A stretch of 64,000 bases of DNA from Schizochytrium sp. TIO01 (lineage: Eukaryota > Protista > Bigyra: Labyrinthulomycetes), in assembly GCA_004764695.1 (NCBI GenBank), contig SMSO01000034.1:124001-188000 (forward strand), in the 5' to 3' direction. The notes beneath the pieces are model-generated. The model saw nothing but the letters and a program-made list of their open reading frames with translations, did no database searches and was not told where the DNA came from. The position numbers were made by a program, and so were the translations under genes. Shown here piece by piece: positions 23,231 to 57,418 of the stretch. Each line of letters starts with the position of its first letter. Within the stretch, counting starts at the first letter, position 1.

Positions 23231-24702
23231 CGCTGCAATCGACTCGTGAAAGGCACGGGCCTCTCCAGCGCAAGGCATGCGTAGTTCTGCGCGAGGCCTC
23301 TGTGACTTCTCCGCTGCCTGCTCCAGAGCTGGCGCAATACGTTCGACGAGGAAGAACCCAATGTCCTCGCGAGCTAGAAACCGAGTATTATGTGGTGCCC
23401 ACCTCCTTCTCCGCAGAAGTTGAGAGAGCGAAACTTCCTTAGGGCTGCTCGAGGCTGTCTGTCGCCTGAATGAATGCCCGGTCTAGCTAGGTCTCCCGCA
23501 GGTGTGAAATAACAAAAAGGCGGAAACGCCAGCTGTAGATTTTGCAGAACCACTGACTAGTACCTGCGGAGCTGCTACCCTTGAATAGACCAGCTCAAGG
23601 ACCCCTCCTGAAAAAGGAGCCCTGCTTCAGAGCGATACTGCCGCCGCTACGAATCTCTTGCGGCCTAACTTGTGGCTTTGTTGAGATTCAGATCGTGTCT
23701 TGGAAGGTCTTAGGTTTCTCTGGCTGATTTTATGCCCTCTTCCGCGGCGCAGGGCCAGGCTTGCTGGCCGTCGGCAGAGGCCAGAAACGACCGCCTCAGC
23801 GTTCTCCGGAAACTTGGTGGCATGCTCAAGTGAAGAACTTGACGGTCTCTAGCTTCAGGTGGCCAAAGGTGGTAGGGAGGAAGAGCCCAAGAGCCCAGCA
23901 CGTAGTCATAGTTTTTATTTGTGGTTCTTTAGATCTTCTCAAGGAATATATATATATCTTGATGGTCCTGCTCTCGGTGGATATGCGCTGTCCCTCTGAA
24001 TAAATCTATATTACAATTGGAGGAAGTAAACTAAAAAGTTGGATGCTGTGAGCACCATAAACTGCCCTCAGTTCTTCCAAGCTGCAGCGGTCAGTTTCCT
24101 TGGCGGCTAGAATCTGTCAAAGCTTTGGGATTTGCTCTCGTTTGTGATGCGCGCAACACTTTCTTCCGGAAATCGCTCCCTTGAGGCGATCCTAGCATGG
24201 ACTAAACCATCTGTTTTTTTATTTAAAGACTTCTTTAATTCGCTCTTTCAAAGAGCAGAAGTACTATGATTCTTGATGTTGATGCTATTATTTATCCCGG
24301 GGTTCTCCCTGAGAAAAACTAGGGAATGGTCACAACCTTCAGCCATGAAGATGCAAGTCATTTGCCGGGAATGTTTACAGACGGTATGTCTACAACAGAC
24401 TACTTAATGTGAGTAAAACTGGTGCGACTTGTCAATTTACTGAGAAGCTTGAGTTTTTCTCGAATGAATACTACAATCAAGAAGTGTGATTTTACATAAT
24501 ATTCTTTTCATTCTTTTCGTACAAAACCTTGTATTGGATATATGTATCATTGTCTCTGGTAATATCAAGTATCTGCCATTTTCGTGGCATGAAAGACCAA
24601 GATTTATTTCACAACAAAACCTTAACGAGCTGATTTGTCAAATTCGAATCGCTAGTAGTCTAAAGAGCACGCATTAAACTAGAAGTACGAACGATAGGCC
24701 CC

Positions 24703-26241
24703 ATGACTAAGCACCCAAAAGAATGCAAGTGTTTCTCCGTGGGAGTTCCAGGTAGTATCGTCGTACATCAGAAATCAATGACGGGTCTCGTTCTGGCGCA
24801 GAAGAATAACGCTGCATCCAGAAGTGGCTCGCTCGAAAAAGGGTTTTACGTATGTGCTACCCCAAACACAACGTCAGCACTGAAGCCTGGAGATCAGATT
24901 CAAGCAATTGAGACGATAAATTCTAGCCCATTCACAAAGGGTAGGAGCAACACCACAAACAACTTCATCAGTCATCTCAGCATTTCCAACGTCCTTCAAG
25001 TTCTTCGCAATGCCCCGAAACACGGTTTGTGGTTCATGGTCATGCGACCTTCCGTAAGGTCAAATCTGGATGGTCTGAAGAACTTGAAAAAGCATACTGT
25101 GCATGAAGCCAATGGTATTAAAGCTGCTCAGACACCACCAGAGGCTGTGACGCCGATAGTAAATTTAGAGACGGTCTCTTTGCCAAAACCTGAGTCACAA
25201 GTTACTCAACAAACCAACACCACGGGACCTCCGTCAAATCTTGCTGCTAAGGACTCTGCTGTAGAATACACGATATCCTCCAAGCCTCCAGGTAGAGATA
25301 GCGACAAAATTAATCGACAAGATTGCTATGGGAGAACCGCTCTAATGCAGGCATGTATGGGTCTCAATCGAGATATTATGAACTGTGAAGTAGTCAAAGA
25401 ACTGGTCAAGAAGTCTAACGTATTCCTAGTGGATAAGAAAGGCCGGACGGCATTGATCCATGCATGCAAAGCGACGTCAAACGAAGAGTTCGCGATATCC
25501 ATATTGCAAGTACTGTCTCTAGAAAACTGCTTACTTTCTGCAGAAGCACGCAAGAAGTTAGTTGATGTAGCTGACGTGGATGGCAAAACGGCGTTGATGT
25601 ATGCATGTAGAAATGGCTATGCCGAGGTAGCCAAAATTCTTATTCATGAGTTTCAAGCGGATGTTGTTTTGCGAGACAAGAAAGGTTCAGACGCATATAT
25701 CTATTCGTGTGAACCCTTACACGATGCGATGGTTGAAATACAGGAGGTCCTCTCAGAGTCGTCGATGTTTACACAACGCGCATTGACGTATGAATATGAT
25801 TGTTTCATGGCGCATTCGTGGGGTCATAGGAACCAAACTCACAAACGAATTGAACGTATTAGCGCCAAGCTTCGAGGTCATGGCCTGAAGCCCTGGGTCG
25901 ACACTGCGCAGATAAGGCGAACGTTCGTTCAGACCATTGCGGAAGGTATTGACAAGTCGCGGAAATTTGTTGTTTTCCTTACTCAAGATTACATGGAAAA
26001 GCTTAAAAATCCAGGCGGGGTGAGCGAGTACTGCAGTATGGAGTTTGGGTATGTGCATATGCAAAACCGAAAAAATGATGTCATCGTGGTCATTCTTCAG
26101 CACTGCATGCTAAATACTCAATCTTGGAGTGGCCCTTTCCTCATGCGACAACATGACTGTGTTTTCATTGACTTTTCCTCTGAAGAACTTGAGAAGAAAA
26201 ACTTTCACAAACTCTTACACATGATCAACTTAAATTTCTGA
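24703..26241 (+). CDS. PDZ-like - ankyrin repeat - TIR domain protein (TIR-A, 512 aa)
   Basis: PDZ-like GFYV..LKPGDQIQAI..VLQVLRNAP. Ankyrins GRTALMQAC, GRTALIHAC, GKTALMYAC. TIR YDCFMAHSWG..WVD..IAEGIDKSRKFVVFLTQDY..YCSMEF (E447, codon 26041-26043). Confidence 0.85.
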   Translation: MTKHPKECKCFSVGVPGSIVVHQKSMTGLVLAQKNNAASRSGSLEKGFYVCATPNTTSALKPGDQIQAIETINSSPFTKGRSNTTNNFISHLSISNVLQVLRNAPKHGLWFMVMRPSVRSNLDGLKNLKKHTVHEANGIKAAQTPPEAVTPIVNLETVSLPKPESQVTQQTNTTGPPSNLAAKDSAVEYTISSKPPGRDSDKINRQDCYGRTALMQACMGLNRDIMNCEVVKELVKKSNVFLVDKKGRTALIHACKATSNEEFAISILQVLSLENCLLSAEARKKLVDVADVDGKTALMYACRNGYAEVAKILIHEFQADVVLRDKKGSDAYIYSCEPLHDAMVEIQEVLSESSMFTQRALTYEYDCFMAHSWGHRNQTHKRIERISAKLRGHGLKPWVDTAQIRRTFVQTIAEGIDKSRKFVVFLTQDYMEKLKNPGGVSEYCSMEFGYVHMQNRKNDVIVVILQHCMLNTQSWSGPFLMRQHDCVFIDFSSEELEKKNFHKLLHMINLNF

Positions 26242-28567
26242 AATGCTTTGCACTCCCCCCCCCCCCTGGAAGGCAATTTCTCTTAAATGGGAAGGGGCGT
26301 CTTACGTTTTTCAGTTGGGTGATACAAATTGTAGGTTTCCCAAATTCAATTCATCATCACACAGGCCTGCTGTGGTCTCTTTTTATATCTAGCTACATAT
26401 GGAAGAACTGTGCGACTATAGGCCTATAATATATAAATTGATATCTAAATAACTCTAATTGATGGTCTGCTTATGTTTTATGCTGTTGACACTGGGCACT
26501 CGAAGTGGTAATGATGGTTGAAGGCAATTTGAAAGTTGGTGTTCAGGAATGCAGATAAAAGAGGTTCATTCAATCCAGCATTGATCACCTCGCACCAGCT
26601 CCTGAGTACGAAAAATGACAATTCAAATGAGTGTATACACCAAGCAATCCCTTACGTCCTCCTTTGATCTTAAGGTTGGACGGACAGACTCAATGACTAA
26701 GAGGGCGTGAGTGTTCATGAATGCACCTCGCAGCCTAAGCTCTTGCTCTGCTCTATTTGACTTTAAATGGCTTAGAGTTGTGCAAGGCAATTACACCTGC
26801 TCATCATTAGTCAATTCAAGAATAGAAGCACTTGAATCGTTAATGGAAGATAGAGGGTTCATGTTATACATATAGAGACCTTGTTTGGGTTCATTGATTT
26901 AAGATCGATTTGCTGCAAATTAACCAGTTGAAAGGAAGAATGATGCATATATTTAGTTACTTTCGCCTGAAAGTGTAAACAGGAACAGGGTTGAAAGGTC
27001 ACAAATACCCGCGCGCTTACTACCCGATGAAGAGATACTAGGTTCTTATTCCAACTTGTTGTGTACTCCCGAACAAAGAAGCGAAGAAGCCGTACTCAAC
27101 TAATCCGTGAATCCTATCAAGTGCTGCTCGACGCAATCGCGTTTTTACTATTGCACAAAGCAGTATTTCAAGTGGCCTGGAAACCTCAGGTCGTGGTAAA
27201 CATCTAAAATGGCAAGCCGCAATGGATTTTTCGCAGTAAATTTTCCAAGCAAAGATAGGAAGAGCTACCTACCTATACGTCTCATCATAATATTGAAGAT
27301 TGCCGAACACGCATGCTTTTCCTCTTTACTCACGTTTTGGCCCAAGAATTCACGGATGATAATTGTTGTTTAACTCGTGGGTAGAAAAAGATACCTTGCT
27401 ATTATTTCTGGCTTTTGCCTTTGGAAGGGTTAGGTGTCAAGTTCAAACTTGAATCATCAAATGATCATTGTCAAACGAGCGCCCCCCCTGTACCCACTTC
27501 GCGATGATTCTAGGCAGAGCCTAATTAGTTATGGAATAAGTTCAGACCACTTAAGCCGGGAAAAAAAGTTAGGCTTAATTGGATTTGTCTCTGAGTTTAG
27601 TCTGTAAAGTTTGCTGTAAAAGACGGACTGCTTGCACCTCATCCTTGTCTTATACGAGTGCAGCCAGGTAGGTTAGTCACTTTTCCCAAGACCAATAGTA
27701 CCTTCTGAAATTTTCAGAAGTCCGTGACTAGCTTTATTAATTTCATGTTTTTATTTTCTTAACATCATAGAGAAAAAGTTGAGTAGTTGGCTTGGACACC
27801 ACGTCGACAGTATTACACAACTTCATAGCGAGTGGGTGATGGCTTGTAAGATTTAGGTTTAATGGGTGTTTAAAATTGAAGTGTCCTTTGTCTGGGTCGA
27901 GTTTATAAAATAATCGCCGAGTAAATGTAAGTGAAATAAAAATAAAAAACAGCTTTTGGGTCGCAGGAGTTTGAGTAAAATGAGCCTATTGCTTTTGAAG
28001 AAGAAGTTGAAATCGTCGAATCGGACGACTTGAAGCTATGAACTTTTGTGCCAAGTATATTGTATTTCGTTGCTTGTATCAGAGCCTCCTTCTGACGACG
28101 TTTTACGAATCTTTTTTTCAATGGCAAGCAGAGGTAAGTTTGAAGGTACGACCGCTCCCGCAATTCATTTTTTTTTCAACTTTTCAAATTCTAATATATC
28201 CTACTGCGGCCATACATATGTATGATTGATTAAATTTTTTAATTTTTGAAAGGAGTGAAATTTAATTAAAACTTTAAAACTTATTGGATTGATTTTGTTT
28301 TTCAAGATTCGTTCATCATACTCTCACCAATCAGCAACTCTTCGTAAAACCTTACTGAGTAAAACTTCAAGTATAAATTTCAGATCTCAGAATCGACAGA
28401 TTTCTTTATCTCTAAGTTTTAAATGGGTGGCAGGCACTAAACACAATTTTCTTCTAGGAACTCAGATGACGGAGGGTTAGACTGCAGCAGAACCTCAACT
28501 CGCTGATCTTCACAAACTCAAAACATCGCTAAAGAGAGTCAAACAAATAACTTCAACAATAGCCAAC

Positions 28568-29602
28568 ATGCATGCACGCACTAAGACACTCCAGTGTGAT
28601 TGCTTTGAAAGGAGACGTGAAGGTAGTATTGTCGTGCACCAGACATCCATAGCAGGTCTCTCTCTGACCTACATACCAAAGGCAACCAGCTCATTTAATA
28701 GAGGGTTTCATGTATGTGCTGTTCCAAAGAGTAAGTCAGAGTTAAAGGTCGGCGATCAGATTATAGGAATCGAGACGATCAACTCGAGCCGTTTCACGAG
28801 GGATAAAAAAGGCACCTCAAACAACTTAATCAGTCAACTTGGTATTGGCGATGTACTCAATGTTCTGAACAGTGCCCCGCGTCGCGGGCTGTGGTTCTTG
28901 ATCTTGCGCCCTGCTGGGAAAACAAATCTTACATTTTTGAAGAAGCAACAACAAAAGACAGTTGTTGCCGCTTCGTCCGAGAAAGTGTCATCTTCCGAGA
29001 AAGTGTCATCGTCCAAGAAAGTGTCATCGTCCAAGAAAGTGTCATCCGAGGAGTCGGAGTCGTCAGAGGAGTTGTCTTCCGAGGAAGAGTTGTCTTCCGA
29101 GGAAGAGTCGTCTTCCGAGGAGGAGTCGTCTTCCGAGGAGGAGTCGTCAGAGGAGTTCGAATGGGATTGTTTCTTGTCGTATTGTTGGGGTCACGATATG
29201 CAAACACGTGAACGTGTGAAATCCATTTGTGATAAACTAAAAGAACATGGCGTGAATCCCTGGCTTGACTCAGAGCAGCTGCAGCACTCAATGCTTATTG
29301 GCATGTCAGAAGGTATTGAGTTTTCGCGAAAGTTCGTCGTTTTCCTTACTGCGGAATACCTGGATTGCTTAGATGAACTAGATGGGCGCAAAGACTATTG
29401 CAGTATGGAATTTGGCTATATAACTCTAAGTGGTCGTAAGAACGATGTGATTGTGGTTGTTCTGGATGAAGATATGAAGAACACTGAATGTTGGCAAGGC
29501 CCTTTTATGCTTTCTCAGAGCGGCTGTATTTTCCATGACTTCTCTACAACGGAAAAAGAGGAGTGTAACTTTGAATATCTCTTGGAAGCGATAAGGAGAT
29601 AA
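28568..29602 (+). CDS. PDZ-like - Ser/Lys/Glu repeat - TIR domain protein (TIR-B, 344 aa), paralog of TIR-A
   Basis: N-terminus aligns with TIR-A (GSIVVHQ, GFHVCA, LKVGDQI, IETINSS, GLWF). TIR WDCFLSYCWG..WLD..EGIEFSRKFVVFLT..YCSMEF (E281, codon 29408-29410). Confidence 0.85.
   Translation: MHARTKTLQCDCFERRREGSIVVHQTSIAGLSLTYIPKATSSFNRGFHVCAVPKSKSELKVGDQIIGIETINSSRFTRDKKGTSNNLISQLGIGDVLNVLNSAPRRGLWFLILRPAGKTNLTFLKKQQQKTVVAASSEKVSSSEKVSSSKKVSSSKKVSSEESESSEELSSEEELSSEEESSSEEESSSEEESSEEFEWDCFLSYCWGHDMQTRERVKSICDKLKEHGVNPWLDSEQLQHSMLIGMSEGIEFSRKFVVFLTAEYLDCLDELDGRKDYCSMEFGYITLSGRKNDVIVVVLDEDMKNTECWQGPFMLSQSGCIFHDFSTTEKEECNFEYLLEAIRR
28973..29155 (+). repeat. Coding 18-bp minisatellite (SSEKVS/SSKKVS then SSEEES units)
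   Basis: TCGTCCGAGAAAGTGTCA-type x4 followed by TCTTCCGAGGAGGAGTCG-type units. Confidence 0.9.
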
Positions 29603-29887
29603 ATTGTTGAGAGATTTCTATAAAGCAGAAGATTGTCCTCAGCGTAAGGAGAAAGATCCTCTTGTCTGGGCAATTGGGCAATTTCTTCAGCAAGAGATTA
29701 TCCTGTAGACTTGCTAAACCAGCATACCTATGCAGGTTAACGTATACTGGAGTTACTGACAGGGCTGCGCAAGCCCAGGGGGAATTTGGTATACCTAATA
29801 GCGTCTAAATACCTTGAGTGATGGGCTGCCAATGCCCAAATCAGTTTAACAGTGCTCCCGTACTGGTATCCGGTAGATTTTATGTTT

Positions 29888-30007
29888 CGAGATGTTAATT
29901 GATGGTTGAAAGCAACCAAAGAGCTAGGTTTCATCTAGATTTTGCGAGGAACCTTAAGCTTACCGAAGTCCATACATTGTAGTGTAGATTAACCCACTCT
30001 GAATTGG
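29888..30007 (+). repeat. Dispersed ~120-bp non-coding repeat, copy A (3' flank of TIR-B)
   Basis: Aligns with 35011-35122 (ttaattgatgg..agcaacc..taggtttcatc.aga..taccgaa..gtagat..cactctgaattgg). Short third copy TGATGGTTGAAGGCAA at 26512-26527, 3' of TIR-A. Confidence 0.8.
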
Positions 30008-30508
30008 ATCAGGTCACTAGCTTATAACCCTAAGAGCATAACGATTTAGTAGAGTTTACCCTACAATACTTTCTTGTGCTTGTAGTTACGAGCCATATGA
30101 GTTGCCTTTGGTTTTATCCAAGTGAAAGGTCTATTAGGAGTAGCTTCTGACCGGTGTGTGTGTGTGTGTGAGGGAGAGAGTGTACCGCTGTGAGTGGCAT
30201 GCTTTGATATGAGCAAAGGGATTGGTAGGAGTATTATCTTCCGACTAATGAAATAGGCTTGCTTGACTTGAATTTTCGTCCAGGAAAAGGAATTGATAGT
30301 AGCAGCACTACCTGGGTAGTGAGTTGGCCTCAGTCAAAACACCTCTTTTGAGCATATTGCACTTTTTCTATCCATCATCACAGTAGAACGCATGTATTCT
30401 TGAGATTACTCTTTACAATATTGCAAGCTGGAAACTCTGAAAAAGTCTTTATACCAAAAACATTAGTACATAGGCTTCATCGCTTCGGAGCTATCGGAGG
30501 GCAAAATA

Positions 30509-30532
30509 AGAATATTCCCGAAGTTCTCGAAG
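30509..30532. promoter_or_regulatory. Candidate heat-shock element upstream of the CPSF30-like gene
   Basis: aGAAtaTTCccGAAg is a perfect 3-unit nGAAn inverted array, followed by TTCtcGAAg; ~600 nt upstream of ATG 31125. Confidence 0.4.
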
Positions 30533-31124
30533 TTCTCAAAGTTCCATGTCAGTGTTTTCGAGTCGCCAGTCGCACAGACTTGTATCCGCTAAAAACCGTT
30601 CGACACTGCGCGGCACGGCGCGGGCGCGGTTGTGATCACACTATAGTATTGTCATTGCTGCTTCCGCGGCCTATTAATCCGCATCTGACTCGTTGCGGCA
30701 CCGCCTGCTCCAGCCTTGGCGTGAAAATTTACTATTGCATCGGTGTGGCATCGAGGGCCTCTGTAGCTTTTCGCTCTACTTTCTCCTCCCTGTATCAAAT
30801 ACTCGCCAAAACACTCTGACTTGACGAGAATCGTTTATCGGCTTAGCAGATAAGGTGTTATATACCTCGTCTGTACGCATTGACCTTGGACCGTGGGCGA
30901 TCTGATATTGACGAGAGAGGTTTCGCGACTTCTCCACTGAGATTTTAACTGCATCATCTTGTATATATTATTTGGCTGCTTTTATTTTGTTTTAAAAAAG
31001 AAGACAACTCCAGAATCATTTTGGAAAGAAACCTTCACACCAAAACCTCGGGCCTTTCCTTCTTGTGCGATAAGCTTGTGATCAGTACAGACTTGAGCAC
31101 TTCGTTACTTCAATTTTTTGCAGA

Positions 31125-33818
31125 ATGGTGGTGCTCAAACCGGATTTTCAGCGCGATGGCGCAGATCACCGTATGCTCTTTGATTTTGAGCTAGATACAG
31201 CAAAAGCCGTGCAGAGCAAGGCTGGGAAGAGCGAGCAGGTTGTGAAATCTCGCGAGCAAAGATACAAAACTGTTGTGTGCAGACACTGGGTGAAAGATCT
31301 ATGCATGAAAATGGATGACTGCGAATACCTACACGAGTTAAACCCGTCACGCATGCCTGAGTGCCGCTGGGGTGAGAAGTGTCAGGTGCCGGATTGCATT
31401 TTTAAGCACACTAAGGAAGAAGACCGCGTGGAGTGTCTTTTCTACAAAATTGGCTTCTGCAGAAAGGGTCAAACTTGTCATTTCCGACATGTACGCAGAG
31501 CCCCTGAGGAGCTTCCTGAAGTTGTGCCATGGGACGAGATTGGCGACAACAAAATGACTGTCACCGAAATTACTTCGACCGAGGATGGTATTGAAAAGAA
31601 AACAATTGTTCAACACAACGAAAACTACAAGGTCTCGATTTGTAAGCATTGGAAGCAAACTGGAGACTGTCCATTTGGTCAACGTTGCCATTTTGCTCAC
31701 GGTGTACAAGAGTTGCGTCAGCGTGGAGGTGAAAATGAGACGAACGAGAAGGCTACACCTCCAAAGACTCTTCTAGACGATATCATTGAGAATTTCCAAA
31801 CTGAAGCTCGTCACTCGGGTGCCATGATACATCCTCTTGATGATTTGGGTAATGACCTCGATACCCCTGATCGAGAAATCTTTCAGGCAAACGGTAGTCG
31901 CGGAAAACCAGCCTATGTGATTGTGCGCACCACTTCAATGGATCATGTTGCCGCATCACTTAAGTACCGTGCCTGGTCTGTGCTCCCTTGCTTTGTGAAC
32001 AAGCTCAACCATCTTTACGATACTCGACGTGAAGTATACATCATTTTTGCAGCCAATGATTGCTCTCAGTTCACTGGTTGTGCGATAATGACTAGTCATG
32101 TGCAGGCGGATCTTGACTTGCCATTTGTGGATTTACCCCCTGAGGCTGAAGGACATGCTTTCATGTTTAGCGTTCAGTGGGTTTACATGTGCTCTCTTGA
32201 GTTCACTGCAACTGCGTTTCTTCGTATACCTGAACCAGATGTGAAGGCAGATCTGCCAGTTGCCATGGCATATGAGTGTACAGAACTTCCTGTTGAAGAA
32301 GGCCATGCTCTTTTAGTGATGATGTATAGGCAGCCTAGAGTTGATGTGGATGTTTCGCAATTTGGAGATGTCAAGTTGTCCGTACACATGGAGGGCCCTG
32401 ATCCATCATTATATGATGCAATTGACGAGCACATTGAACAATGGTCCAAATTTGAGCTCGAGAACCCGAACTTTCATCACACAACAACCCAGCGTGGCGG
32501 AAGAGAATCTACCGGACCTGGTACATCAGCCAGTGCTGGAGGTGAAGCCCAAGTTCTGGGCCCAGGTGGTGTTCCTGTGGCCCCAGGATCTATTCACGTC
32601 AAACGACCCGGCTTTGTAATTGGCTGTGATCGAGAGTCATTTTGTGCTGACATGGTTCGCTCAAAGGTAATGGCTGGAAGCTATGCTCACAAGTCAGATA
32701 TGGCAGTCATCCAGCCTGGTACTCCTCTTGTTCTTTTTGACATCACGGCTGGTAAGCTTATTGGTGTTTTTGAAGCTCTTGGACCGGCCGAGGAAATGAT
32801 CGAACCCACTCTTTTTATTAGCCACGATGATGATAGCGAGTCCGCACTTCCTGTACAAGTTCGCATGCGCCGTGTCATGGATGGCCCTCCGCTCAATGTA
32901 CGCCAAGTTCCTGCCACGGTCTTGAAGACCGAGGGTGGGATGGCTTCAGCATTTGTTCCCATTGAGCCGAGAAAGATGCAGCAGCTTGCCAATTTGTTTA
33001 CCCGTGCTGCAGGTGCACCGGCTGCTGCTGCTCCGGAGAATGTCGAGGTTGCGGCAAGCTATCCTCCTGGAATTACCATCAACGAACTCCCAACCTCCCG
33101 GAACAATGAAGTCGGTAAGTCCGTAGCGGTCAATATTCCTTTTCCGCAACACTTCAAAGCAGCACATCGTATTATTGGCAAGGGTGGTAGTAACATTCAA
33201 CGTATTCAGGACTGTGGTGTTCGTTGTATTGTTAAAGCTCTTGGAGCACCAAGTAACCAGAATCAAGGTAACATTGTTGGTCCCTTTGAAGTGCTCGTGT
33301 ACTCTGACAATATGGAAAATGTGGACAGGGCTATTCGTCTTGTCACTGATATGGCCGAACAAATTATTGAGCGCTTCGAGGATCATGAGCGTGGCCCAGG
33401 GCGTGGTGGGCCCCGTGACAGAGATGGCGCTAGTGTTGCCGGTAGCGATCGTGGCGGAAATGATCGAGGATTCCGAGGTGGTGGAAACGGACGTGGTGGT
33501 GGAATGGGCGGCAATGACCGTGATAGAAGAGGACCCCCTATGCAAAGGGGGGGACGAGGCCGCGATAGGGAACGCGGCCCACCACGTGACTTTGATGATC
33601 GAAGGGGAAACACACCGTCGCCAGCACCTTCGTCCCGTTTTGATGACCGGCGGCGCGGGGTTAATGGTGGTCCTGGCCCTGACCGTAACTCGGATTTTGG
33701 CTCTGTGGGTGGCCGTGGTCCACCTCCTTCCAGATATCGTGATCGTGATGACATGAGTGACCGGCGTGGTCCTCCGCGTCGAAGGAATAGATCCCCCGGT
33801 CGCACTCATGAGTATTAG
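31125..33818 (+). CDS. CPSF30: CPSF30-like RNA-binding protein: 4 CCCH zinc fingers + YTH + DCD + KH + RGG tail (897 aa)
   Basis: N-terminal LFDFE and RYKTVVCRHW..LC..DCEYLH fingers. Fourth finger YKVSICKHW..CPFGQRCHFAHG. YTH (AWSV..IIFAAN..FTGCAIMTS..FSVQW), DCD (GFVIGC..IQPGTPLVLFD..LIGVFEA..PVQVR), KH (RIIGKGGSNI). Confidence 0.8.
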   Translation: MVVLKPDFQRDGADHRMLFDFELDTAKAVQSKAGKSEQVVKSREQRYKTVVCRHWVKDLCMKMDDCEYLHELNPSRMPECRWGEKCQVPDCIFKHTKEEDRVECLFYKIGFCRKGQTCHFRHVRRAPEELPEVVPWDEIGDNKMTVTEITSTEDGIEKKTIVQHNENYKVSICKHWKQTGDCPFGQRCHFAHGVQELRQRGGENETNEKATPPKTLLDDIIENFQTEARHSGAMIHPLDDLGNDLDTPDREIFQANGSRGKPAYVIVRTTSMDHVAASLKYRAWSVLPCFVNKLNHLYDTRREVYIIFAANDCSQFTGCAIMTSHVQADLDLPFVDLPPEAEGHAFMFSVQWVYMCSLEFTATAFLRIPEPDVKADLPVAMAYECTELPVEEGHALLVMMYRQPRVDVDVSQFGDVKLSVHMEGPDPSLYDAIDEHIEQWSKFELENPNFHHTTTQRGGRESTGPGTSASAGGEAQVLGPGGVPVAPGSIHVKRPGFVIGCDRESFCADMVRSKVMAGSYAHKSDMAVIQPGTPLVLFDITAGKLIGVFEALGPAEEMIEPTLFISHDDDSESALPVQVRMRRVMDGPPLNVRQVPATVLKTEGGMASAFVPIEPRKMQQLANLFTRAAGAPAAAAPENVEVAASYPPGITINELPTSRNNEVGKSVAVNIPFPQHFKAAHRIIGKGGSNIQRIQDCGVRCIVKALGAPSNQNQGNIVGPFEVLVYSDNMENVDRAIRLVTDMAEQIIERFEDHERGPGRGGPRDRDGASVAGSDRGGNDRGFRGGGNGRGGGMGGNDRDRRGPPMQRGGRGRDRERGPPRDFDDRRGNTPSPAPSSRFDDRRRGVNGGPGPDRNSDFGSVGGRGPPPSRYRDRDDMSDRRGPPRRRNRSPGRTHEY

Positions 33819-34499
33819 ATCAATGTCTCCAATTCTATATAATTTCAATATTAATTTGATGCGTTCACTATTTTTACTTGCGCCATGAAACTTTCACAGC
33901 GATGATTCTGCTTATGCCTACGCACCTTTTTGTTTAAGAGTGAAGAATAGTCCAGTACCACGAAATGTGAGATTGGTTTTCTGAATTTGTTCGAGTAAAG
34001 CTCCTCGCCCCTTTCCATAACGTTGCGAGAAAGATCCTATCCTTCTCTCCTCAAGAAAAAGAAGAAAGAAACAAGACGAGACAAGAGAAAAGCAACAACA
34101 CAATCATATTAATTGAATTTCAGCCGTGACAATAAATCATCGCGAATCACCGACTTTTTTTTCATACATAAGAACTTATAAACATAAAAATTTAGACTCT
34201 CACTTCTCCAGATCTTTAGATACGCTCTTGCAAACACAGCGTATTGCCTTGGTTACCTCCGATTCAAGATTCTTTGATGTCGATCTTAGATCTGTTTTAC
34301 CCTTCCGCTATATCATTAACTGTTGATCGTCTCTAGACTTACTGCCACTCTCGGTATTACATTAATAGACAACAACATCCTTGTCTTGCAACTAGTGGAG
34401 CCCTGCATCTATTAGATAAATAATATGTTTCGATACGAATGATCTTTGCTCTCTAAGTCAATGCCATTGAATCAGCAAGCAGTAAGCAAATTGTAAATG

Positions 34500-34770
34500 A
34501 GGGCTTTCTGCGTTCATTTTTTTTCTCATTGGCTTCATCATCGGCTCTAAGGTTTGATCATCAGTATGTACTGACTCGCAATTTATACCTTCGAGAATCA
34601 TGTCACTGGGTCCTTCTTTAAAAGATTGCGAAGTTTATTGTTATACCGTAACGCATTACCTTTGTACTTTGGTGAATATCAAAAGACTCAATCTTGAAGC
34701 GTCCCTTTCTCATGAATCAACATGATTGTCTTTGCTTAGCGCAGGTTTTTCGTCAGAAGAGAGTTCTCGA
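34500..34770 (+). pseudogene. Decayed fourth TIR-gene copy (C-terminal TIR remnant)
   Basis: 34686-34760 (actcaatcttgaagcgtccctttc-tcatgaatcaacatgattgt...ttttcgtcagaaga) aligns with TIR-A 26116-26186 (TQSWSGPFLMRQHDC..FSSEE), with TGG>TGA and a 1-nt deletion. Followed by repeat copy B. Left boundary approximate. Confidence 0.65.
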
Positions 34771-35010
34771 CTTGATTGCATATTTCTTTGGTTTCTAGGA
34801 ATATGAACTAGCTTTAGCAATATATGATTTGTAGTTTTGCCGAGGTTACTATTCGAATAGCTATGGAGATTTACCATGGATTAGAGTCTCTGGCAGAAGT
34901 ATGTAGGCCTAGCAGTCATATAATAGATATAAGCATATACCCTGATTGATAGATTTCCAAGACTCATCTCAATGAAGCAGGATAACATACGGTACGCTAG
35001 TACCGGGTTC

Positions 35011-35122
35011 CGAGAATTTAATTGATGGACGAGAGCAACCTGACAGTAGGTTTCATCAAGACTTGATAAGAAAGTAAAGTCTACCGAACATTTTAGAGTA
35101 GATCTACCTCACTCTGAATTGG
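35011..35122 (+). repeat. Dispersed ~110-bp non-coding repeat, copy B (3' flank of TIR remnant)
   Basis: Homologous to 29888-30007 in the same orientation. Confidence 0.8.
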
Positions 35123-35997
35123 GGTATCGGAAAAAGGGTGCGAAGTTTTCATAGTGTACCTTGTGGTCAATTCCTTATGGCTTTTTTTTACTTCTAGTTA
35201 TTATATACCCGACTATTGTTAGTGCTAGAATACTTTATATTTTTGCAAAGTGCTTTAACTGCTTTATATCACAGCTAAAGAGCTGGGAGTTACGCCAATA
35301 AAGTTTTGTAAGATCAAATAGTCAAAATGAGGCTAACGGTACTTGAAGGGTTTCTGTAGAACAACAAAAAGTTCATATTTTACATCTAAAGCGTCGGAGG
35401 ATGATTTACATTCTCTGATCTGGCACTGAATACAATAAAAAGGTGCCAGTAGGCTTCTTAAAGAGGTGCACTGTACAGCAACCATTGAAGGGACCTATGA
35501 TTTTAGTTCCTTCTCGAAAGTGTAAAGAAGGACAAAATTGAAAGATGTCGCTTCATAAGATCACACATTCGCTAGGTAGTTCTGTCGAATCGGATAAATC
35601 AGACTTTTTTTTTTTCGTTGTGTGGTTGACTTGACTCAGAAGGCTCGAGGGATAATAGAGGGCATGATTGCAATTGCAATCTTGCTGTGAACCCCGCTTT
35701 TCATCAGTTATTGTCGCAACAAAATTGTAGGGAAACTGATGAGCCATCTGATGTCATGCAAATGATAAGGTACGCAAATCTATATTGTTCTAGCACCTCA
35801 TCCTTGTCGTAGTCAAGCGAATTTAAGTCTCCCGAACGATTACTAACCAATCAGAAAAGTTAACACTAGTTGGACCGTCGTGATATGAACTTCATATTAC
35901 CACTACATGTTACGTGAGATCTTTTCACTGCTTGATAAATACTTTTTGAGCAAGCCACGTCGGGAATCAATTTCCGTCCTAAGAGCTATGAAAATGG

Positions 35998-36001
<4 letters not shown>

Positions 36002-36034
<33 letters not shown>
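36002..36034 (+). repeat. (CT)n microsatellite
   Basis: Directly visible, ~440 nt upstream of TIR-C. Confidence 0.95.
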
Positions 36035-36037
<3 letters not shown>

Positions 36038-36471
36038 CGCTCTGTCTTGTGTGAAACATTCTATCCAGTCCATCAATTTTGGCAGATTGTCTTTCGTAAC
36101 ATCTCGACCTCTCTATCGGTCATGGCTGATTGACACGCCTAGTATTTGGTATCCAAGGGCTAAGAGGTACACACTGCGTAGTATCATCTTCCACGACCTA
36201 CCTAGACCTTTTTTCGGATAGCCATAGCTGAGCCTTAAACAGCACAGATTTTTCTTTTTAAAATCTGCTAGGGGGGGCGAGGCTTTCATCAGCAATAGCA
36301 GCATTCATTGCTTTAGATAAGAGTCTTGATCATAAGCATGAAGATTGTATTATAACTAATTAATAAGAACCTTAGTCTTGGTAAAACACAAAGACAGAAT
36401 CTGCAAGCAAACCAGTTACTCACGCGGTACGAAAAGTATATCGCTGTAAAGGCAATAGTTGGCCTAGAAAA

Positions 36472-39309
36472 ATGAATCAGGATGTAGTGTATGACCCACT
36501 CGACCAAAGGGCAATGAAGCCTTCTGAGGCGTATGCAACATGGGATGGCCTGTACTTTGCATCCTTGGAAACACAACAAATGTATCATCAACTTATCGAG
36601 AAGGGCTTTGAGGTGGTTCTCCATGATGGAAAGCCATCTCTTCGCCCAGCGCAAGCAACACGGATTTGGGCTAATAATCTTGTTCTTAAAGGTGTGAAAA
36701 AGGATAGCCACTATAATCTTGACAAGCTCAAGCCTGGACTTTATACCTTCGTGGCGTCTATTAGCGAGGCACGAAGTCGCATTAGTGGCATTCAAAAGTG
36801 TCACGTGCAACTTGAGGCTTTCAACAATCAAGGGAAAACGCTTGTTCTCTCAGAATCACAGAAAATTCGTATGGGAAATGCACCCCTTGAGATCAAGTTC
36901 GCAATGGAAACAGAAGGAGACGTAAGAATTCGTTTTTACAACCACAGTCTCTTCAATACTGTAAGGGTAAGCAGTTCCCTTGATTTCCGCAAGTTTCCAC
37001 GAATGAGACAGGACTTGTCGGACGCTAAGAAAAAGTCGTCATCAATTGCAGAGTACGGTGAGTTTTCAGTTGAGCTAACCAAAGACTGTTATGGGCTAGG
37101 GTTACATTTGTACTGGCACCCAGAGCTCAACGCAGTTTTTATATACGATATGGACTGTAACAGCACTGCACAGAGGTCTTGTAAAATCGAACATGGCGAC
37201 CGTCTTAAAGCAGTTCAAGGGCAGCGAGTTGAAAATATGACCCTAAGACAAGTTATCAAAGCACTTAGAAATGCACCGACTACTGCAGTTCTTCTTCTTG
37301 AACATGGGGAAGAGGGACTACAACTTAACCCTGATCTACCTGGCTCGCGCGTGTGTCACGTTGACATGCCATTAGAACAGTCCTTAACTACATCTCGTAG
37401 TTCAGTGTGTAGTCCAACCTCTCCGCAGTTGGACGACAACTTGAGCTTGTTTGACTGCATCAAGCTGGGAAGCTTCGAATCTGTTCAGCGCCTTCTCGTA
37501 AGGGATCTAGCTTTGCTCAATACAAGGGACAACCTAAAGAGTCTTACTCCTCTCATGTGGGCAATTCATTCTGAGAGCGGGGGTCATCCCGACATTGCTC
37601 TGTATTTGATTGAAAGCGGGGCAGACATCAACGCTAGAGATAAGATGGGAATGACTATCCTTATGTATGCCTGTCAGTATCGTCAACGACTTGTTGCACA
37701 AGCACTTTTAAAACTTGAGGTTGATCTCAATGCACAAGATATCGAGGGTAGAACTGCTCTAATGTATGCTTGCTTACAAGACCAGGTGGACGTTGTGCGA
37801 GAAATACTCAATATTGGAGCTGATCCTAATCTTCAAGACTCGGAAGGGTTTACTGCTCTTATGTATCCTTGCTGTAAGGAGATCGCTTCTTATGAAGGGG
37901 GGCGCGAAGACGTCGTTGATCCCTTGTCCATGGACTGTGTGCAAACCTGTTGGATTGCGGGCACAGACTTACACATTCAGACAAAGGAAAGGCATCGAGC
38001 GATTGATTTAGCAAGTTGTTTTCATCGTCGAGACATAGAGTCCTTTTTTAATTTCATCATGGATCCTGATGGACTGGCTAAAACTCTTGAGAATGACCTT
38101 CAATTAAATCGCAAATGCATTGTGGCATTTTATAATGCAGAATACCGCACCAAAAAAGACTGTACTCAATATCTCGTTGATGCAGATCTTGTGAAGATGG
38201 GGTTGGACAATCTTCAGCAAAGAAATGCTTTACTTGCATACTTTAATGCAGCGAATGATATACCTATGCTTCCAGTTCCCTCACCCCGTAGTGCCGCCAG
38301 TTCGCTGGAACACCAGTTTTTATCAAGTTTTGAAGCAGAAGAAGTTCCACCTCCGCCACCGCATTCTATATTGCAGCAAACAAATGAAAGCTCTTCGCAT
38401 GCACTGCCTCAGGCAAATATCACATCGCCACATGATAAAGATGTAGTTACTTCAGATACAGCTTATCCTCTTATCAAATCGCTCCAGAGTGGATCGGCAT
38501 CAACTTTACCTTTGCAAAATTTGCAAAGTAAGAGCAACGGTTCTGAACATCTATCGTCCGTTCGTCAACGAAGCACAAGTGATGCAACAATAAAAGAATC
38601 ACCGTCCTCACCTACAGATAGGATGAGTAGGACATCGTTTGATGCGGCAAAGGCTTCTGGGGATGAGACTTCTGCGAACTCTTCTTCCACGGCCTCTGGA
38701 TTATCAACTTCAAGGGTGGAAGCAGGAATCCATCGTTTATCTGGATCTTATCAAACTTGTGGAGTACCCACACATTGCGATGAGAGGAAGACTGAAGTTA
38801 CTGAAAAATTGCAGCCCCGTCACTACGCTACGGCGCCGGGCTCATGTCAAATATTTTCTGAACCTATTTCTTCGCAAATGCAAAGATATGATGCGTTCTT
38901 ATCTCACGACTGGGGTGCACGAGGGCAAGACCACGCCACTGTTCTTGAGATAAGCGAAAAGCTTCGAGGTGCAGGCAAACGAGTCTGGATAGATGAAGAT
39001 TTCCTTGAAGGAAATATTGGAGCAGAGGCAACTGAAGGCTTACAAGCCTCAACAAGAATTCTCTTGTTCATCACGCGCCGGTACATGAATAAACTTGCAC
39101 GCACAATAGATGATGTCTGTAAGAACGAGTTCCTTCAAGCTCGTGAATTCCACAAGCCAGAGGATCTCATTGCTATTGTAATTGACCCAGCTGTGACAGA
39201 TTCGAGCAGATGGACCGGTCTCTTGGCAGAGAGTAAACAAAACGTGATTGATTTCAGTACCCCGGAAAAGCGCAACGCAAACTTCTCGCAACTTCTCACT
39301 CTTCTCTAG
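36472..39309 (+). CDS. Unknown N-domain - PDZ - ankyrin repeats - SAM - TIR protein (TIR-C, 945 aa)
   Basis: PDZ FSVELTKDCYGLGL..IEHGDRLKAVQG..VIKALRNAP (~37060-37305). Ankyrins LTPLMWA, GMTILMYAC, GRTALMYAC, GFTALMY. SAM-like LAKTLENDLQL..AFYNAEY..YLVDADLVKMGL..QQRNALL (~38070-38245). TIR YDAFLSHDWG..VWIDE..EGLQAS..LFITRRY..VCKNEF (E886). Confidence 0.85.
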   Translation: MNQDVVYDPLDQRAMKPSEAYATWDGLYFASLETQQMYHQLIEKGFEVVLHDGKPSLRPAQATRIWANNLVLKGVKKDSHYNLDKLKPGLYTFVASISEARSRISGIQKCHVQLEAFNNQGKTLVLSESQKIRMGNAPLEIKFAMETEGDVRIRFYNHSLFNTVRVSSSLDFRKFPRMRQDLSDAKKKSSSIAEYGEFSVELTKDCYGLGLHLYWHPELNAVFIYDMDCNSTAQRSCKIEHGDRLKAVQGQRVENMTLRQVIKALRNAPTTAVLLLEHGEEGLQLNPDLPGSRVCHVDMPLEQSLTTSRSSVCSPTSPQLDDNLSLFDCIKLGSFESVQRLLVRDLALLNTRDNLKSLTPLMWAIHSESGGHPDIALYLIESGADINARDKMGMTILMYACQYRQRLVAQALLKLEVDLNAQDIEGRTALMYACLQDQVDVVREILNIGADPNLQDSEGFTALMYPCCKEIASYEGGREDVVDPLSMDCVQTCWIAGTDLHIQTKERHRAIDLASCFHRRDIESFFNFIMDPDGLAKTLENDLQLNRKCIVAFYNAEYRTKKDCTQYLVDADLVKMGLDNLQQRNALLAYFNAANDIPMLPVPSPRSAASSLEHQFLSSFEAEEVPPPPPHSILQQTNESSSHALPQANITSPHDKDVVTSDTAYPLIKSLQSGSASTLPLQNLQSKSNGSEHLSSVRQRSTSDATIKESPSSPTDRMSRTSFDAAKASGDETSANSSSTASGLSTSRVEAGIHRLSGSYQTCGVPTHCDERKTEVTEKLQPRHYATAPGSCQIFSEPISSQMQRYDAFLSHDWGARGQDHATVLEISEKLRGAGKRVWIDEDFLEGNIGAEATEGLQASTRILLFITRRYMNKLARTIDDVCKNEFLQAREFHKPEDLIAIVIDPAVTDSSRWTGLLAESKQNVIDFSTPEKRNANFSQLLTLL

Positions 39310-54204: not shown

Positions 54205-56466
54205 CTAGCGGCGGAGTCGTTTGGGTAAAGTATCTCCCTCCATTCCGGACTCCTTGCCAATCGAAGGCACAGATGAAGCCTGTTCCTGACGTTCTCGTTT
54301 GGTGGACTCCTGCTTCACTGCGGCAGGACCAGTGGCTTGCTGACGATGCTTCTTGAACTTTTTGTACAGCTGAAGAAGTTTTCCGCGCAACTCTTTGTCC
54401 TTTAGCACCCTGACGAAACTCTTAAAGTCTCGTCCATGACGATCTACAGCACAGGGATCTCCACCATTGTTGAGAATAATCGATGCCATTTCCTCAGGAC
54501 AAGGGTGGCCCTCTTGGGCGGTCATTAGAAACGCTGTAAGACCCTCGTTAGACTCTTGCACTTCGATATTCGCCTTGTACTTGACGAGGAGACCTACGAT
54601 TTCTTCAATCTTTGAATGTTCTCTTCGACATGTCATCATGAGCGCAGTTCTTCCACGGTAATTCTGCAGATCAGGATTAGCACCAGACTTCAACAACGTC
54701 TCCACCACTGAGACATGTGCTTGATGACACGCATACATAAGCGCAGAGGCTCCTCTTTTATCTTGTGCATTAATGTCCTGACCGTCATACTCAAGGAGCA
54801 GTTTAACCATGTTCGCATCCCCATGGAACGACGCTTTCATCAAAAGTGTTCCTTCCTCACCTGTAAAGGAATGATTAACCTTGGAAAAAATCATCTTTGC
54901 GATTTCAACCTTCCTTCCATTGCAAGCAAGATCGAGAGCAGTATGGCCCTCCTGATCCTTGAGGTCTACTCGGGCATTGTTTTCGAGCAAGCATGCCACA
55001 ACCTCATCATTTCCTTCCATGGTCGCTGCCATTAATGCAGTGGAGCCCTTCCTGTTCTGAAAATTAATCTGGGCATTATTCAAAAGTAAGAGCTTTAGCC
55101 CAGAAAGGTTGTTGTAGAAAGCGGCAAGGTTTAATGCAGTTTCTCCTTCTTTGCCTTCCAAATCAGGTTTCGCTTTGAACTTCAAGAGATCCTCTGTGAT
55201 TTCAGAATACCCCTTTTTAACTCCTTGCATGAGAGCAGTCCACTTATTGTTGTCCTGCAGGTCAACTTGGGCCCCATTCTGTAACAAATCAAACACGACG
55301 GTCGCGTGTCGGTTGCCCACAGCATGCATCAGAGCGGTTGAACCTTCGTAATCTTTCACATCAATGCCTGCTCCGTTCTCACAAAGAATCCTTACAATGT
55401 CCGTGTGCGATTTCAAGGATGCCAAGATAAGGGCAGTTTGACCTTTCTTGTTTTGTAAGTCAACATCAACTCCATGATCGAGGAGGGTCTCAACGATATC
55501 CGCGTGGTTCTCATCAGTCGCTTTCATCAGGGCTGTCTCTCCCTTTACATCACGCAAGTCCGTAGTCGCGTTGGCTTCGAGTAAGTACTCCGTGCTTCTA
55601 AGTGAGCCGTGAGATGACGCTAGAAGAAGGGCACACTGACCATCTTTATTTTGATGGTTGATGTTTGCCCTTTTCTGGTGGAAGGTCTTGACAAGATCGC
55701 GGTGATCAAGCATGGATGCGTGCAAAAGGGCAGTGTTTTGGTCCACGTCTGTCAGGTCAACGTCAGCGCCCCCGTCAAGCAGTTGCTGAACAACATCGAC
55801 ATGATTACCTTTTGTAGCAAAAGTCAGAGCACTCCAACCCCTGCAGTCCTGCACATCAATTGCAGCCTTTCCTCTGAAAAGAAGAATGCTCACGGTCTTG
55901 GAATGACCTTCAGACGACGCCAACATCAGTGCAGTCTTGCCCTTCTCGTCCTTTATGTTGACGTGTGCGCCTCGTTTAAGGAGGAGCTGTACCAACTCCT
56001 CATGACCCATCTCAGAGGCTTTCATCAATGCTGTTTCGTTCTCGTTATCTCTCAGATTGACCTTAGCGTCGGACTCTATCAAAAGGCTTGCAATATTCGT
56101 GTCCCCTCTCCTCGCTGCAATCATCAACGGAGTTTGTCCACAATCATCACGCGAGTTAACAACCGCACGCCTTCCGAGCAAGCATCTCGCAAGGGGCTCA
56201 TGGCTACCCTCACACGCAAGCATGAGTAGGGTCTTTCCGTAATCATCACGTAATTGAATATTGGCCCCTTCGTCCAATATCTCCTTTACACGCGAGGTAT
56301 TGCCGTGGCAGACTGCATTGATTAGGACCGAAGCATTGCGAACGCCAAAGACATCCAGCTTCTGATCGCCTGTCGGTGTCTTGACTTTCGCAGCTCTCCT
56401 CATCTCGTCAGTGGGGTAGCCTTCGGCTCCACCGCCACGACTGAAGAGCTGGAAAACGTTTTGCAT
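54205..56466 (-). CDS. Ankyrin-repeat protein (~19 repeats)
   Basis: Regular 33-aa GxTALxxA..G..V..LL..GA.VD repeats and a basic C-terminus (PKRLRR). Start uncertain. Confidence 0.9.
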   Translation of the reverse strand: MQNVFQLFSRGGGAEGYPTDEMRRAAKVKTPTGDQKLDVFGVRNASVLINAVCHGNTSRVKEILDEGANIQLRDDYGKTLLMLACEGSHEPLARCLLGRRAVVNSRDDCGQTPLMIAARRGDTNIASLLIESDAKVNLRDNENETALMKASEMGHEELVQLLLKRGAHVNIKDEKGKTALMLASSEGHSKTVSILLFRGKAAIDVQDCRGWSALTFATKGNHVDVVQQLLDGGADVDLTDVDQNTALLHASMLDHRDLVKTFHQKRANINHQNKDGQCALLLASSHGSLRSTEYLLEANATTDLRDVKGETALMKATDENHADIVETLLDHGVDVDLQNKKGQTALILASLKSHTDIVRILCENGAGIDVKDYEGSTALMHAVGNRHATVVFDLLQNGAQVDLQDNNKWTALMQGVKKGYSEITEDLLKFKAKPDLEGKEGETALNLAAFYNNLSGLKLLLLNNAQINFQNRKGSTALMAATMEGNDEVVACLLENNARVDLKDQEGHTALDLACNGRKVEIAKMIFSKVNHSFTGEEGTLLMKASFHGDANMVKLLLEYDGQDINAQDKRGASALMYACHQAHVSVVETLLKSGANPDLQNYRGRTALMMTCRREHSKIEEIVGLLVKYKANIEVQESNEGLTAFLMTAQEGHPCPEEMASIILNNGGDPCAVDRHGRDFKSFVRVLKDKELRGKLLQLYKKFKKHRQQATGPAAVKQESTKRERQEQASSVPSIGKESGMEGDTLPKRLRR

Positions 56467-57418
56467 AAGTTTCCCCGCCTTCGTCAATCCCAAAGGTCAG
56501 CAAACGTAGCTCTTCTCCTCGACCTAGCGATGATTCTTGAAGTGATTGTTCTGGTTTTGCTTCAGCTCTGCAGGCTTAAAAAAAAATTAATAATCACAAA
56601 TTTGTCTGTTTGAGAGCGCTAAGACCCTTATACGCTACTTAAGCAATGCAGGATGAGAGCACCACTGCAAATGGAAAGAAAGGAAAAGAAGACTATGAGC
56701 GTAAAAAAAAACAAGAAAACCAGCAATGGGTCAGACGCTATAGAAAGTTCTTCGATAAAGCTAAACTCCAAAGGAGATACTAAATTAGGATTTGCTACAG
56801 GTCAAGTAGTTTCCCTCTCTTAGAAAAGAAAAGGTTTTTACAATTAAAAATGTATGCGAGCACAAGTAGGAAGAGGAAGAGCCATCAGGTTTTTGAGAGC
56901 GAAAGTGATGAGAACGCTTGGAAATAGTTGATTGCACAAAAGGAGAGTGAGGAACAAGGTGTTTTTCTTTTTATAACCGAAGTAAAGGTTTTGGAGTGTA
57001 ATGTTCAGAGGTGATACAACTGATCAAGTAACTGGTTTCACGCTAATTTGAAGGAGACCGCCAGCCGATTCTAATGGAATAGTACAGTTTTGTTTTACTG
57101 AAGCTAGACTGTATTGTTAACATGAACGCTCACGCCATCCTACAGCTACGTACGCAACTTTATACTATGCATACATAGATCCTTGAATAGTAAAAGCCAA
57201 ACATAGTCTCAGTAGACCTTGAGGGGGGAGGGAGGAGGACGCCAGCTGAGTTAACCATAAGCAACGAACGGTCTAAAATACAACTACAACAAGACGCGCA
57301 GCTTTTCCGATGTTAATTAATGTTTTAAGTTTTTGTGAAATCTGTTGGGGTTCGAATTTAGAATAGAAAGAAAGACGTAAGAGACTACTACCTGCTGAAT
57401 ATATTTCTATAAAAGTTG

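Follow-up and report, generated by a model that had tools for sequence, protein, structure and literature searches.

The locus examined here raises the question of what is encoded by three neighbouring genes for TIR-domain proteins in the labyrinthulomycete Schizochytrium sp. TIO01, and whether they could form a system acting on nicotinamide adenine dinucleotide (NAD+). TIR domains are now viewed as ancient NAD+-processing immune enzymes, and to our knowledge almost nothing is known about their control in unicellular eukaryotes. The analysed window is a 64,000-nt stretch of contig SMSO01000034.1 (positions 124,001-188,000), to which all coordinates refer, and searches of the organism's own genome covered the 64 Mb assembly with its 37 contigs. 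The region 24703-39309 contains four long open reading frames on the + strand, namely P1, P2, a frame at 31125-33818, and P3. A first-pass annotation had listed P1, P2, and P3 as co-oriented TIR genes of modular build; the frames were recovered, and so was the modular build, with variable N-terminal and middle modules ahead of a C-terminal TIR. P1 (24703-26241, + strand) encodes 512 residues comprising a PDZ-like N-domain, a disordered linker, ankyrin (ANK) repeats, and a TIR_2 domain; P2 (28568-29602, + strand) encodes 344 residues with a PDZ-like N-domain, S/K/E repeats, and TIR_2; and P3 (36472-39309, + strand) encodes 945 residues with an N-domain, a PDZ domain, ANK repeats, a SAM domain, a long disordered linker, and TIR_2. 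On balance, we favour the reading that these are three intact genes for cytosolic multidomain TIR proteins, whose TIRs would cleave NAD+ and of which P3 would be SARM1-like.

The evidence that carries this reading lies in the TIR domains. The Pfam TIR_2 model (PF13676), which has a curated gathering cut-off of 28 bits, matched P1 at 25789-26226 (50.1 bits, E 4.8e-13), P2 at 29156-29593 (44.2 bits, E 3.3e-11), and P3 at 38887-39306 (47.4 bits, E 3.3e-12), all on the + strand and all past the cut-off, which upholds the earlier assignment of a C-terminal TIR_2 to each protein. The CxxE glutamate that had been noted in the motifs YCSME, YCSME, and VCKNE is kept in all three, within CSMEF 444-448 of P1, CSMEF 278-282 of P2, and CKNEF 883-887 of P3. 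In the alignment, these glutamates fall opposite E74, an active-site residue of the solved NAD+ hydrolase (NADase) Cat1. The NADase site of Cat1 is lined by S7, H8, D33, and E74, and the D33A and E74A substitutions abolish toxicity (PMC12162218), so the claim that the glutamate stands at a catalytic position rests on a mutationally validated counterpart. Profile alignments further placed the FLSH, WxD, and CxxE motifs of the family opposite S7/H8, D33, and E74 of Cat1, respectively. The corresponding residues are FMAH368-371, D400, and E447 in P1, FLSY202-205, D234, and E281 in P2, and FLSH809-812, D841, and E886 in P3, with P3 keeping the Ser, His, Asp, and Glu equivalents of all four Cat1 residues. 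Cat1 itself is a bacterial CARF-TIR protein of type III CRISPR (PDB 9mud); unlike P1-P3, it carries a CARF sensor, is activated through filaments driven by cyclic tetra-adenylate (cA4), and is without PDZ, ANK, or SAM.

A Pfam scan of the genome returned at least 42 TIR_2 matches. Alignment of 29 own-genome TIRs revealed that the Cys of the CxxE motif is invariant and that the Glu and the Phe next to it are conserved in at least 90% of the sequences. When the profile of this 29-member family was searched against the PDB, Cat1 was the best match (E 3e-10), and PdTIR, AbTIR, a plant TIR-only protein, Roq1, TIR-1, and SARM1 were also retrieved. When metagenomes were scanned with the alignment of the TIR subclade, 26 loci of the same TIR subtype emerged on eukaryote-like marine contigs, and the glutamate is kept in 18 of the 19 metagenomic relatives aligned; in the 10 of these loci scanned with Pfam, neither PDZ nor ANK was detected. 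One marine metagenomic locus (L073:60-1484) encodes a TIR followed by a Pfam-detectable SAM, and another (L083:2546-3958) has a weak cyclic-nucleotide-binding match ahead of its TIR. The TIR subtype of this locus, with the signature YDxFLSHxWG ... WxD ... CxxEF, is widespread in marine protists. NADase activity of the P1-P3 TIRs is a reasonable inference from sequence, because the glutamate and the pocket align to Cat1, because conservation is family-wide, and because protist TIRs with the same glutamate are active: the TIRs of amoebozoans, choanoflagellates, cryptophytes, and oomycetes have been reported as active NADases, and thraustochytrid TIRs fall in a clade with a Chlamydomonas reinhardtii TIR that produces 3'-cyclic ADP-ribose (3'cADPR) (bioRxiv 10.64898/2026.04.20.719644).

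Analysis of P3 indicated the most elaborate build of the three proteins. Its ANK repeats (37450-38049, + strand) were matched by Pfam Ank_2 with 86.9 bits (E 1.4e-24), the last repeat being recovered with jackhmmer. Pfam detected no SAM in P3. The 80 residues past the last ANK repeat (38050-38289, + strand; approximately residues 527-606) are found again in 12 or more genes of the genome, and a profile built from 12 such paralogues matched the ARAP2 SAM in the PDB (E 2.3e-5) together with approximately 25 other SAM chains, the match list being almost wholly SAM. The AlphaFold model of this segment is confident, with a predicted local distance difference test (pLDDT) of 84.9; Foldseek placed it at TMt 0.7-0.8 to Eph SAM domains, and VIA-align matched it to SAM domains at Z scores from 8.9 down to about 6, the best with a root mean square deviation of 2.0 over 64 residues. 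SARM1 and TIR-1 are represented among the VIA-align matches by their SAM domains (Z 7.7, 7.5, and 7.0). By these models, P3 carries a SAM domain with the predicted five-helix SAM fold, so the earlier assignment of a SAM, missed by Pfam, is supported by the paralogue profile, AlphaFold, Foldseek, and VIA-align. At least 12 ankyrin proteins of the genome (loci L003-L009 and L066-L068) end in the same divergent, barely Pfam-detectable SAM, and in four of these a TIR is present as well. The order ANK-SAM-TIR is found in at least three genes besides P3, namely L003, L005, and probably L004, which with P3 make a set of four or more in the genome.

Upstream of the ANK repeats, P3 carries an N-domain (36472-37056, + strand; residues 1-195) and a PDZ domain (37066-37326, + strand). 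The N-domain has no Pfam match, and its best Atlas score of 0.75 is uninformative. The PDZ domain contains the canonical G-L-G-L loop and narrowly passes the gathering cut-off of Pfam PF00595 (24.0 against 23.2 bits), while the PDZ domains of paralogues of the whole module reach 32.7 and 29.8 bits. Among the frames of the genome, only P3 matches both PF00595 and PF13676. The N-domain and PDZ together were found at 44% and 30% identity in L001:1782-4319 (C33:3555500-3561000) and L002:1429-3615 (C6:1916500-1921500), respectively. L001 continues into a WH2/CCDC53-like part and L002 into a weak RING match, and neither continues into ANK-SAM-TIR. The module appears to be a reusable targeting cassette.

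Comparison of P3 with SARM1 and TIR-1 revealed a common layout of N-terminal alpha-solenoid repeats, SAM, and a TIR that lies C-terminally and carries the catalytic Glu, and the TIR family profile matches both proteins (E 2.6e-6 to 4e-3). SARM1 consists of ARM repeats, a tandem SAM, and TIR, whereas P3 has ANK repeats and a single SAM; P3 is therefore analogous in layout and not a member of the SARM1 family. P3 also differs from SARM1 in its additional N-domain and PDZ and in the disordered linker before its TIR, and in sequence this TIR resembles the TIR_2 types of bacteria and plants more than it does SARM1.

The intactness of P1 and P2 was assessed from public sequencing runs. In 18 runs with contig totals of 21-49 Mb, well under the genome size, 30-53% of the words of P1-P2 were present, compared with approximately 70% in genome-sized runs. 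Coverage was compared over positions 24300-30200, the P1-P2 stretch, in three small runs and one genome-sized run. In the small runs, P1 was covered from 24500/24639 to 26266/26458 and P2 from 28393/28518 to 30145 or beyond, with depths ranging from 23 to 470, and coverage dropped to approximately zero over the spacer at 27650-28240; the genome-sized run was flat at approximately 110. P1 and P2 are thus transcribed, as shown by the coverage of RNA-like runs over the P1-P2 stretch. No intron-like joint was found for either gene in the RNA-like contigs, which are collinear with the DNA over this stretch, and the earlier description of the genes as intronless holds to that extent, namely for P1 and P2. 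The one joint seen is an in-frame length variant of 36 nt, or two units, in the P2 repeat (run X2). In one divergent strain, three 1-nt deletions compensate for one another, so that the P2 frame is preserved, and among 15 listed strain variants of P1, 9 are synonymous and 6 non-synonymous. The possibility that these are pseudogenes was rejected on the basis of the frames, intact in several strains, the in-frame indels, and the RNA-like coverage. A poly-C tract at 26254-26266, just past the P1 stop, lies within or at the end of RNA-like contigs of two runs and is missing from the genome; it probably arose as an artefact of sequencing or assembly where the transcript ends.

The relationships among the three genes were examined at the level of domains and of the TIR tree. 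Identity between P1 and P2 is approximately 50% for the N-domain as well as for the TIR, and their middles differ. The ANK block of P1 (25300-25752, + strand; approximately residues 200-350; Pfam Ank_2, 96.4 bits, E 1.5e-27) is replaced in P2 by two 18-nt (6-residue) tandem arrays (28973-29148, + strand), which Tandem Repeats Finder resolved into SSKKVS x4 at 28973-29046 and ESSSEE x4.4 at 29069-29148. Different middles had been proposed for the three proteins, and each is now accounted for: ANK in P1 by Pfam, S/K/E repeats in P2 by the tandem arrays, and ANK with SAM in P3 by profile and fold. Judged by these identities, P1 and P2 are tandem duplicates with swapped middles. A decayed remnant of a further P1/P2-type copy, recognised by nucleotide similarity, lies at 34682-35122 (+ strand) and retains no open frame. 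Its first part (34682-34733) is 81% identical to TIR-coding positions 26112-26164 of P1 (53 nt, E 1e-7), and its last part (35007-35122, 116 nt) is 74% identical to the 3' flank of P2 at 29884-30007 (E 1e-13). In a tree built by maximum likelihood from 32 TIRs of the genome, from which the truncated row L010 was left out, P1 and P2 are sisters (support 99/94) and join P3, L003, L004, and L033 at moderate support (88/83), with P3 closer to ANK-SAM-TIR genes on contig C13 than to P1 and P2. The first-pass annotation had described a tandem array of three genes; this description fits P1 and P2 but not P3. One array of like genes was rejected because only P1 and P2 are tandem paralogues, because an unrelated YTH gene (31125-33818) stands between this pair and P3, and because the P3 TIR groups with the C13 genes. 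The locus is two recent duplicates plus a nearby gene of different build, and not a coherent array.

The nature of the N-domain of P1 (24703-25077, + strand; residues 1-125) and P2 (28568-28945), in which the two proteins are 50% identical, is less plain than that of the PDZ in P3. A PDZ had been claimed for all three proteins, and the claim stands for P3 through Pfam; for P1 and P2 there is no Pfam match even at E<=10, no entry in the own-genome PF00595 scan, and no PDZ match among PDB sequences, and their likeness to PDZ comes from hhalign, Atlas, and Foldseek. With hhalign, the N-domain matched the P3-type PDZ alignment at 83.5% probability (E 8e-6) and an independent profile of 20 other own-genome PDZ domains at 66.7% (E 5e-5), the latter match covering mainly the C-terminal half of the domain; 30 column shuffles gave at most 0.7% and the TIR profile 0.3%. 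Its Atlas neighbours, which are based on language-model features, include several PDZ clusters at 0.90-0.91. The AlphaFold model made from the two sequences is poor (pLDDT 39.9), and the approximately 50 best Foldseek matches of this model are all PDZ, each of them weak (E 0.13-0.8). The alignment follows the order of a PDZ: a G-L-x-L loop is succeeded by the strand GDQI, 15 inserted residues ahead of helix B, a helix that closes with LRNAP, and the last strand.

Relatives of the N-domain are scarce. A profile search of the organism's own genome returned P1 and P2 and no further copy, no relative emerged when metagenomes were scanned with the P1/P2 alignment, and an exhaustive profile search of 1.84 billion protein representatives yielded P0001 as the sole true relative. 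P0001, in a Logan assembly, is a 99% identical copy of P1; a word-based search with the whole of P1 retrieved this copy and otherwise only ankyrin proteins, and a search with the P1 TIR region gave nothing beyond it. The word-based search with P2 gave no match, probably because its low-complexity repeats swamped the words. A further candidate, P0121, was rejected as spurious because weak per-repeat scores add up over its 5,975 residues, which comprise approximately 48 near-identical repeats of 104 residues. Four potential metal ligands, C8, C10, H22, and C51 in P1 numbering, are invariant in both N-domains, which may be chance with two sequences only; a CxC acylation site or a small zinc site is possible. 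It is unlikely, in our view, that the domain is a new lineage-restricted fold, possibly metal-binding through these four residues, in which the PDZ signals would be convergent local motifs. The lack of Pfam, PDB-sequence, and wider protein matches would suit such a fold, as would the low pLDDT and the concentration of the hhalign match in the C-terminal half, but three methods indicate PDZ and nothing else, the shuffled controls stay near zero, and the predicted order of strands and helices is compatible with PDZ. The N-domain of P1 and P2 is probably PDZ-derived.

In the mechanism that we propose, the TIRs would cleave NAD+ once brought together, giving NAD+ depletion and/or cyclic ADPR-type products. 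For P3, self-association of the SAM would bring the TIRs together, and the ANK block, along with the N-domain-PDZ module, may gate or localise the protein, as ARM and SAM do in SARM1. For P1 and P2, and more speculatively than for P3, the lineage-specific PDZ-like domain might recruit or sense a peptide ligand, with clustering driven by that ligand. Several observations weigh against the favoured reading. P1 has Ala at the position of Cat1 S7 and P2 has Tyr at that of H8, and TLR2 and IL-1R9/10 have Glu at the catalytic position yet are inactive (bioRxiv 10.64898/2026.04.20.719644). The linker between SAM and TIR in P3, disordered over approximately 200 residues, departs from SARM1, and the homodimer prediction for the P3 SAM scored 0.00, a result that bears neither for nor against self-association. 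For the P1/P2 N-domain, likeness to PDZ is backed by no curated model, and the RNA label of the runs used for coverage is a tool's guess.

The departures of P1 and P2 at one active-site position each, and the inactivity of some Glu-bearing TIRs, would also be in keeping with TIRs that are non-enzymatic adaptors, working through TIR-TIR contacts on PDZ, ANK, and SAM scaffolds like the adaptors of animal TLR/IL-1R; PDZ, ANK, and SAM are classic scaffold domains. We regard such adaptors as improbable here, as the Glu and the Asp of WxD hardly vary over a family that is large and divergent, a pattern expected for catalysis, and the nearest solved matches are enzymes. A different alternative accepts NADase activity but gives it a non-immune role, as a PDZ-localised, SARM1-like metabolic or stress switch in NAD+ homeostasis, dormancy, or programmed cell death. 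The SARM1-like ANK-SAM-TIR layout of P3 and the housekeeping genes around the locus are in line with this role, and the N-domain and PDZ that P3 has in common with actin-related (WH2) and RING-type paralogues suggest targeting rather than pathogen sensing. Against it, the duplication of P1/P2, their domain swapping, and the decayed copy resemble the birth-and-death evolution typical of immune families, and so does the large TIR repertoire of the genome; we consider a non-immune role rather unlikely. A history of duplicated genes, exchanged domains, and a decayed copy is compatible with a family of immune type, and the PDZ module common to cytoskeletal-type paralogues may equally indicate a role in localisation. 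The reading of P1-P3 as TIR NADases, with P3 SARM1-like, remains the one that we favour.

The protist TIRs reported as active share the helix-C Glu with P1-P3, and most non-TLR eukaryotic TIRs keep this residue; that study assayed isolated TIR domains and did not describe PDZ, ANK, or SAM architectures (bioRxiv 10.64898/2026.04.20.719644). In the literature, we found no paper on a PDZ-ANK-(SAM)-TIR architecture, nor on PDZ, ANK, or SAM joined to TIR in protists. The first-pass annotation had put the system forward as a candidate undescribed one, which is apt for the architectures but not for the TIR category, because catalytic-Glu TIRs have already been reported as widespread in protists, including thraustochytrids (bioRxiv 10.64898/2026.04.20.719644). 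Animal ANK-SAM scaffolds such as ANKS1A/Odin, ANKS3, ANKS6, and Caskin have ANK directly followed by SAM, as in P3, and their SAMs are among the profile and fold matches; unlike P3 they are without TIR, and the likeness may be a convergent pairing of domains. Within the same genome, the ROCO-TIR and TIR-like-TPR families belong to the same genome-wide TIR expansion as P1-P3, with YDVFLSHAWG and CxxEF as shared TIR_2 motifs, but they have other sensor parts (LRR-Roc-COR or TPR) and form a separate TIR subclade. PADLOC gave only weak matches to the candidate models PDC-S66 (TIR part) and PDC-M72A (ANK part), with no match to Thoeris ThsB. The SLOG-type receptors STALD and LSDAT_euk were not found in the genome, which is weak evidence because the control genomes were equally silent.

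The genes surrounding the locus are ordinary eukaryotic ones, encoding a protein kinase, NMD3, an amino-acid transporter, an ankyrin protein, HMG-CoA reductase, and a SET protein. A 762-residue protein at 54205-56493 (- strand), 15 kb downstream of P3, consists nearly entirely of ankyrin repeats, which are 30-38% identical to the repeats of P1 and P3. The intervening gene at 31125-33818 (+ strand) encodes 897 residues with CCCH zinc fingers, YTH (E 5e-22), DCD (E 1e-11), and KH domains, followed by an RG-rich tail. The pairing of CCCH with YTH is reminiscent of CPSF30-YTH of plants and apicomplexans, and the DCD (Development and Cell Death) domain is known mainly from plants; the added DCD and KH are unusual.

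If the TIRs are inactive, these genes would merely add to a TIR expansion in protists that is already large. At its most far-reaching, and as a proposal to which we give little weight, the locus would combine a SARM1-type machine (repeats, SAM, TIR NADase, and PDZ targeting), independently built or anciently retained, with a fast-turnover sensor-TIR pair whose PDZ-derived sensor has no counterpart in other sequenced organisms, the two together forming an infection- or damage-triggered NAD+-depletion or signalling arm of cell-autonomous immunity. The pair P1 and P2, in which an acidic repeat has taken the place of an ANK block next to a fixed TIR, is a small and tractable example of domain swapping. 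The occurrence of SAM, repeats, and TIR in one protein outside animals would mean that the SARM1 solution, with SAM oligomerisation and a solenoid gate, arose repeatedly or predates animals.

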